Assembly (NCBI RefSeq): GCF_016433145.1
Contig: NC_058135.1
Coordinates: forward strand, 298,610,694-298,674,693
Reading direction: 5' to 3'
Length of the DNA stretch: 64,000 nucleotides
Origin: Gracilinanus agilis
Lineage: Eukaryota
Positions 50,021 to 50,914 of this stretch are shown here, one piece after another. The stretch's first letter is position 1. Each line of letters starts with the position of its first letter. The notes under the pieces were generated by a model. The model made no database searches and had not been told where the DNA came from. It worked only from the letters and a program-made list of their open reading frames with translations. The translations under genes and the position numbers were made by a program.

Positions 50021-50087
50021 GGCCGGGCCGCCCCCCTCCCTGAGCCGCGCTGCCGGAGCTCATCGGGGAGATACGGGCCTCGAACCC

Positions 50088-50914
50088 ATGGACACGTCGT
50101 ACCCCCGCGGGGAGCCCCTGCCCATGACGCCTCGAGGCCCCGAGCCCGGCGCGGCCACCGTGATCCCCGTGGGGCCGCCGCGCCCCCCGAGGGACCACTT
50201 GGTCTGGTCCGTCTTCAACACCCTCTACTTGAACCTGTGCTGCCTGGGCTTCCTGGCGCTGGCCTATTCCATCAAGGTAGGGGAGGCGGCGGGCCTCGGC
50301 CGCGCACGTGCGCCCCGCGGGCGGCCGGGGGAGAGAACCGTTAGAAAGCCGAGATCCGGCCTTCCAGGGCGGGGCAGAAAGCGCCGAGCCAGCGGGGGAG
50401 GGAAGAGGCGGCTGCCTGCCCTGGAGAAGGGGGCCGGGACCAAGCGGGACGGGGGCGGCGCCTCGGGCTCCCCAAGGGTGGGCTTAATCCCGGGAGCCCC
50501 CTCGTTCTGGGGGAGCGGAAGGAGACAGAACCCCCCCCCCGGCAGGGAGCGGCCTAACGGTGCTTTTTAAGTGAAAAAAAAACAGACGAACCCCCTTCCC
50601 TCCCCCAAACTGCTTCGAGGCGGCGGGGAGCCTCGGCGCTTCCGAGCGCCTTTGCCCCGGGACGTCCATCTTAGGGCCTTTAATGGTTTGTCCCTGCCCA
50701 GGCCCGGGACCAGAAGGTGGCTGGAGACCTGGAAGCGGCGCAGCGTTTCGGCTCCAAGGCCAAGTGCTACAACATCCTGGCCACGGTGTGGACGCTGCTG
50801 CTGCCCCTGCTGCTCGTGGCGCTGGTGGTGACGGGAGCCCTGCACCTATCCCGCCTGGCTCAGGGCTCCATGAGCTACTTCAGCGTCAAGTTCCACGATG
50901 CGGATTATGACTGA
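50088..50914 (+). CDS. IFITM5: Interferon-induced transmembrane protein 5 (BRIL), 133 aa
   Basis: Exons 50088-50276 and 50702-50914. Protein: MDTSYPRGE...[63 protein letters not shown]...[10 protein letters not shown]. It is adjacent to and convergent with PGGHG, as in human. Confidence 0.96.

Follow-up and report, generated by a model that had tools for sequence, protein, structure and literature searches.

Osteogenesis imperfecta type V has a single recurrent cause, the substitution c.-14C>T in IFITM5, and to our knowledge no explanation has been given for the great harm that five additional residues do. It was shown that c.-14C>T in human adds the residues MALEP to BRIL and that a knock-in of c.-14 in the mouse reproduces MALEP, and the account of the human mutation given in an initial annotation of the DNA studied here is thereby confirmed by papers on human and mouse. 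A second human substitution, c.-9C>A, adds MEP. Conservation of the c.-9 base in 48 mammals was already reported, and the knock-in study implies that the sites of mouse and human are the same. A comparable situation is known from MEF2C, in which c.-8C>T and c.-26C>T likewise change a short leader to create an in-frame upstream AUG, add few residues and act dominantly; however, the MEF2C variants are loss of function, whereas MALEP-BRIL is a gain of function or a hypermorph.

Next to such disease alleles, there are genes in which the unmutated leader already carries an upstream start. TRPV6 has a conserved N-terminal extension with an ACG start. In PTEN, CUG and AUU starts lie in frame and in good context upstream of the annotated AUG and are conserved in mammals, which resembles the arrangement of the ACG in IFITM5 described below. 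Unlike the known extensions, the candidate extension in IFITM5 comprises only five codons, which is too short for the usual coding-signature tests, and its nucleotide invariance in placentals is atypical of a purely coding extension. It would represent a very short addition to the known class of non-AUG N-terminal extensions. In the literature searched, no proposal of initiation at the wild-type ACG was found, and where a paper mentions IFITM5 as well as near-cognate or non-AUG starts, the passages are unrelated.

The locus of the agile gracile opossum (Gracilinanus agilis) analyzed here shares with the human and mouse c.-14C>T site the gene, the position, the frame and the L-E-P codons. In placentals, the block reads ACG GCG CTG GAA CCC (Mus caroli and others), giving MALEP after the C>T exchange, whereas the opossum has GGC CTC in place of GCG CTG, so that the peptide would be M-G-L-E-P and the codon at -9 is not CTG. 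While the disease alleles carry an ATG created by mutation, the case considered here is the unmutated ACG, which is a candidate start.

The IFITM5 Gene in the Opossum Sequence

The window, i.e., the whole stretch of 64,000 nucleotides that was analyzed, contains IFITM5 on the plus strand. Coding exon 1 (50088–50276) comprises 63 codons, begins with the ATG at 50088 and ends at a GT donor at 50277. It is followed by a phase 0 intron (50277–50701, GT…AG, junction K|A) and by coding exon 2 (50702–50914) with the stop codon TGA at 50912–50914, and these exon ends agree with the annotated marsupial IFITM5 proteins. Both coding exons match the Pfam family CD225 (PF04505), the domain being split across them (exon 1: E = 1.1e-10, profile positions 1–30; exon 2: E = 1e-9, profile positions 31–67). 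In protein searches, exon 1 showed 100% identity to the IFITM5 protein of Monodelphis domestica, and with the opossum protein from the database (P0001) as full-length query the next matches were marsupial and then placental IFITM5. On these matches, the gene is the IFITM5 orthologue rather than another IFITM paralogue. The main AUG lies in the context CCC-ATG-G with a C at -3, and a putative polyadenylation signal AATAAA is seen at 51761–51766 (plus strand).

At 50747–50749 the window has TTC, encoding Phe, where the database protein P0001 has Leu (AAQRF/LGSK), which is either a polymorphism or a difference between assemblies. Downstream of IFITM5, a Glyco_hydro_65m gene lies on the minus strand at four of the loci compared (L003, L005, L006, L007); a minus-strand open reading frame in the window (51869–52702) tested for synteny with the GH65 gene PGGHG gave no Pfam match. 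Within exon 1, the sequence CCCC-CGC-GGGG at 50103–50113, about 16 nt past the AUG, is predicted to fold into a small GC hairpin. It reads CCCC-CGT-GGGG in Macrotis and Dromiciops, is disrupted in Petaurus (CCCGCGTGGGG) and is absent in placentals (CGAGG).

Promoter and Predicted Leader

A TATA box (TATAAA, 50015–50020, plus strand) lies 73 nt upstream of the ATG and 58 nt upstream of the ACG. Transcription generally starts 25–35 nt downstream of a TATA box, and the position of TATAAA thus predicts a transcription start at about 50043–50048. The predicted 5′ leader, with its start derived from the TATA position, extends from 50045 to 50087 (plus strand), which would place the ACG about 26–30 nt into the mRNA. 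An upstream ATG was found in the leader of none of the species compared. Two spliced RNA contigs from a mole-rat-like rodent (mole-rat in the following; L011, L012) contain the orthologous ACG; these contigs extend upstream of the TATA box and therefore define no start.

A TATA-like box is present in all mammals read, at a spacing to the ATG of 62–69 nt in placentals, 73–80 nt in marsupials and 53 nt in the platypus. The conserved block that contains the ACG (see below) is anchored to the ATG and not to the TATA box, as the distance between TATA box and block varies by 18 nt in therians and by 7 nt in placentals. This bears on the reading of the block as a fixed-position downstream core-promoter element of the DPE or MTE type. 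Its placement about 18–30 nt downstream of the predicted start would suit such an element, but elements of this type need exact spacing, and with TATA–ATG distances of 62–80 nt in therians and a block fixed to the ATG this candidate was rejected as exceedingly unlikely.

Further upstream, two elements conserved in mammals precede the TATA box (49967–49992 of the window; about -125 to -100 from the ATG in L001–L008), namely CTGT(C/A)ATTTG and a TATATAG-type box. The first element is CTGTCATTTG in the window (49967–49976, plus strand) and CTGTAATTTG in most placentals and the platypus, it can be aligned in all 10 mammals, and it might be a homeobox-type site. The TATATAG-type box looks like either a MEF2 site or another TATA box and is degenerate in the window opossum alone (CTACCCAGAG, about 49981–49991). 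A scan for bacterial-type promoters and terminators, which is irrelevant to this DNA, found nothing.

Orthology of the Upstream ACG

Immediately upstream of the start codon the window reads GAT ACG GGC CTC GAA CCC ATG (50070–50090, plus strand). The in-frame ACG occupies 50073–50075, i.e., positions -15 to -13 of the ATG, with its CpG at 50074–50075, a G at -3 (50070) and a G at +4 (50076). A lone in-frame ACG in one species is no more than chance; its retention at orthologous positions is more than that. For comparison at the DNA level, the window opossum was aligned with three more marsupials, four placentals, two mole-rat RNA contigs, platypus, lizard and ostrich, so that nine therians (four marsupials and five placentals) were covered. 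From -18 to the ATG, the marsupials (window opossum, Macrotis, Dromiciops, Petaurus) read GAK ACG GGM CTC GAA CCC ATG, and the placentals (Trichechus, Dasypus, Mus caroli, mole-rat, Bos mutus) read GNS ACG GCG CTG GAA CCC ATG. An ACG with G at both -3 and +4 (G-N-N-ACG-G) is thus present in all nine. Moreover, 20 of 20 over-extended placental gene models, which come from cattle, whales, horses, bats, beaver, murids, shrews, a mole and a primate-like source, read T-A-L-E-P-M, the third base of the Thr codon being invisible at the protein level. Protein models that look primate or possibly human (P0027, P0029, P0034, P0045) entered with their N-termini only. According to this alignment, the ACG in the window is truly orthologous to the c.-14 codon of human and mouse. 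The position, the CpG, the context at -3 and +4 and the L-E-P codons are common to marsupials and placentals, which supports the conservation of position, CpG, Kozak context and LEP peptide between this marsupial and human that the initial annotation had suspected.

The conservation does not extend to all mammals. The platypus reads AGG CCG CAG CCG GAG CCC ATG, with CCG at the ACG site, so that the conservation of the codon and its frame across mammals, on which the initial annotation had made its proposal depend, holds for therians and not for all mammals. In lizard, ostrich and a bird metagenome contig the sequence upstream of the IFITM5 ATG could not be aligned, and a search of metagenome contigs for further mammalian IFITM5 DNA yielded only this bird contig and one weak match.

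The placentals (L005–L008, L011) have, in addition, an in-frame CTG at -9, again near-cognate and again with G at -3 and G at +4, and it is this codon that the human c.-9C>A exchange turns into ATG; the marsupials have CTC at -9 to -7, which is not near-cognate. The model of Talpa occidentalis (P0090) begins with a Met further upstream and reads TALEP-R-DTACP, so that another codon stands in place of the canonical Met. Several other residues of this model are odd as well, which may reflect a sequence error, a pseudogene or a real change of the start codon. Outside mammals, the axolotl IFITM5 model (P0092) starts MPA-MDTSYP with an in-frame ATG at -9, and a turtle isoform (P0081) and a caecilian model (P0098) have 22–23 extra N-terminal residues. 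Should these models be correct, non-mammalian species tolerate short extensions of the N-terminus.

Constraint on the Leader Block

The ACG is the 5′ part of a block of 18 nt that abuts the start codon (50070–50087, plus strand; G-N-N-ACG-G-S-N-CT-S-GAACCC in the alignment of nine therians). These species are phylogenetically related, and Fitch parsimony steps were counted for them on a fixed tree that follows the accepted phylogeny. Between -15 and -1, 4 steps in all were required (mean 0.27 per site), 12 of the 15 sites are invariant, and no indel or stop codon occurs. Within exon 1, first codon positions show a mean of 0.98 steps (52% invariant), second positions 0.47 (68%) and third positions 1.53 (19%), and at fourfold sites the mean is 1.92 steps with 1 of 12 sites invariant. 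The difference in invariant sites between the block and the fourfold sites is significant (Fisher p = 3e-4). The conservation sets in exactly at -3 of the ACG: position -18 shows 0 steps, positions -16 and -19 to -21 show 2–4 steps each, and thus -1 of the ACG and everything upstream are variable, the leader upstream of the block having many indels between marsupials and placentals. Platypus, lizard and birds lack the block. Taken from these rates, the block, which is confined to marsupials and placentals, is very probably under purifying selection, and the constraint on the ACG region proposed in the initial annotation holds, as the block evolves far more slowly than synonymous sites. The disease codon hence sits in a therian-specific stretch that is slower than synonymous sites and has the context of a weak start.

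The pattern of changes bears on what the selection acts on. The codon-pattern test suggested in the initial annotation gave a divided answer. On the one side, 3 of the 4 steps in the block fall at third positions and the fourth exchanges Gly and Ala, as would be expected of a translated peptide, but this is not significant (p = 0.11). On the other side, the five placentals show no synonymous variation, as each of the four codons that follow the ACG is identical among them (p = 0.03, or 0.014 if the ACG is included) against a baseline of 42% of the exon 1 codons with conserved amino acid that are identical in all five. The lack of any synonymous change in the five placentals suggests that the constraint acts on the nucleotide sequence more than on an encoded peptide.

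This nucleotide constraint would be accounted for if the block were an mRNA element providing the start context of the main AUG, for example as an extended context or as a protein-binding site on the short leader, with the ACG being incidental and any initiation at it a tolerated by-product outside selection. All three codon positions being frozen in the placentals supports this explanation, as do the run of conservation, which continues unbroken through the ATG to +8, the conserved weak C at -3 of the AUG, which is shared even by the platypus, and the third-position equivalents of the block, which are slower than true synonymous sites (mean 0.6 vs. 1.9 steps, p = 0.03–0.05). It is weakened by the reach of the constraint, since according to a review the classical context extends only to about -6 and the constraint here extends to -18. 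Furthermore, folding revealed no RNA structure that is conserved or unusually stable: the alignment reached only -4.75 kcal/mol in RNAalifold and contained one covarying pair, and the opossum leader is no more stable than its shuffles (z = -0.07), so that conserved RNA structure was rejected as the cause. We know of no factor that would bind such an element. Altogether, a role in the start context of the main AUG is possible, and we regard it with considerable doubt.

Nucleotide-level invariance in placentals would equally fit a DNA site for a transcription factor that lies just downstream of the transcription start and arose in therians along with expression specific to bone. The frame and the ACG would then be coincidental. 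The block is therian-specific, and bone-restricted expression of IFITM5 was reported to be therian-specific as well. Moreover, the IFITM5 promoter is described as being under the control of Sp1, Sp3 and Gli2, and CpG methylation is described as silencing it. However, the exact abutment to the start codon would then be a coincidence, no known motif was matched to the block, and its variation falls mostly at every third base, which makes a DNA site an unlikely explanation.

As to the origin of the block, its antisense strand in all four marsupials matches the tRNA B-box consensus GGTTCGANNCC (50076–50086 of the window, minus strand; 2489–2499 of L001–L003, minus strand). A tRNA or SINE origin was rejected, as 2 matches stand against 0.67 expected, 16% of shuffles reach 2 and the placentals lack GGTTCGANNCC; ARAGORN and Rfam found no tRNA and no Rfam family at the block.

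Retention of the CpG

The C>T exchange at -14 destroys a CpG, and the initial annotation had named an unmethylated GC-rich region as an alternative reason for its retention. Around the site, the CpG observed/expected ratio (o/e) is island-like in the window opossum (0.80), yak and armadillo (range 0.80–0.96). It is low in Mus caroli (0.32), mole-rat (0.37), Petaurus (0.43) and Macrotis (0.45), yet the CpG at -14 is kept in all four, and in Mus caroli and Petaurus the final 45 nt of the leader contain just one CpG besides it. Judged by a CpG-island value of o/e above about 0.6 in the lineages that keep the CpG, these four lie below it, and here the GC-rich alternative fails. As controls, CpGs of exon 1 were followed in the nine species. 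Of those that involve a third codon position 0 of 15 are kept in all nine (mean retention 50%), and for NCG codons, which are the proper control because C>T is non-synonymous there and G>A is silent, the count is 0 of 8. The survival of the CpG in CpG-poor lineages together with its loss in the controls indicates that lack of methylation or mere avoidance of an ATG is an insufficient explanation.

The same data bear on the view that there is no selection on the ACG itself, only C>T being purged and everything else being due to regional GC richness, a CpG island or chance. The C>T exchange is known to be dominantly harmful, and the island-like o/e values of opossum, yak and armadillo would support such a view. 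However, purging of C>T protects neither the A nor the G of the codon, none of the NCG control codons is kept throughout, the CpG survives in the four CpG-poor lineages, and it is the whole block that is conserved and not one base. We therefore disfavor purging of C>T alone and consider it very unlikely.

Initiation at the ACG as a Possible Mechanism

Of the single mechanisms considered, weak in-frame initiation at the ACG that is maintained by selection appears the most likely, and it is proposed here tentatively, as less probable than not. The fixation of the block to the ATG, with a variable distance to the TATA box, favors a role tied to the start codon, and the block would act on the mRNA in the choice of the start site. 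Ribosomes scanning a short TATA-driven leader of about 32–50 nt would first meet an ACG in the context of G at -3 and G at +4 and, 15 nt further on, an AUG of weaker context with its C at -3. A small fraction might start at the ACG to give Met-(Gly/Ala)-Leu-Glu-Pro-BRIL and the rest would start at the AUG. Selection would then keep the ACG, its context and its frame, and C>T would additionally be purged because it converts a weak start into a strong one that is dominantly harmful. According to a review, non-AUG starts depend critically on a G at +4, and CUG is the best near-cognate codon by 2–3 fold. Moreover, MALEP-BRIL was shown to drive the MEF2, NFATc and NR4A reporters that wild-type BRIL drives too, and to do so more strongly; since it acts on the pathways of the wild-type protein, a small physiological amount of an extended form is conceivable.

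Several observations count against selected initiation at the ACG. In abundance the extended protein is harmful, being lethal to heterozygous knock-in mice, and published blots of constructs with the wild-type leader are described as showing one product. IFITM5 is absent from a large list of non-AUG proteoforms (PMC9789052 supplement), although the gene is not expressed in the usual cell lines. In the sequence data, the periodicity does not reach significance (p = 0.11), the placental codons are invariant and the platypus lacks the ACG. A more far-reaching version would hold that the minor ACG-initiated Met-(Ala/Gly)-Leu-Glu-Pro-BRIL is a more potent signalling form that is itself selected, and that osteogenesis imperfecta type V represents an overdose of a physiological isoform and not a wholly new protein. 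We consider this version rather improbable.

If weak initiation at the ACG occurs, the wild-type allele already makes some extended protein, which would recast the disease as a problem of dosage and would explain why MALEP-BRIL acts on wild-type BRIL pathways. It would also mean that a very short conserved non-AUG extension can be invisible to standard coding-signature screens. If it does not occur, a disease gene would still have an unexplained regulatory element at its start site, namely this block.

Surroundings of the Gene in the Window

A local BLAST and repeat search revealed a near-perfect inverted duplication in the window, with arms of about 5.7 kb at 42454–48150 and 58047–63772 that are 96–99.7% identical. 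The arms show mirrored runs of N (185/369/167 vs. 167/369/185) and hold a match to an IFITM-like exon 1 (46646–46741, minus strand). They may represent either a genuine palindrome that arose by duplication of IFITM paralogues or a fold-back artefact of the assembly. IFITM5 itself lies between the arms in a unique spacer of about 9.9 kb (48151–58046), which contains a gap of 500 N at 55227–55726.
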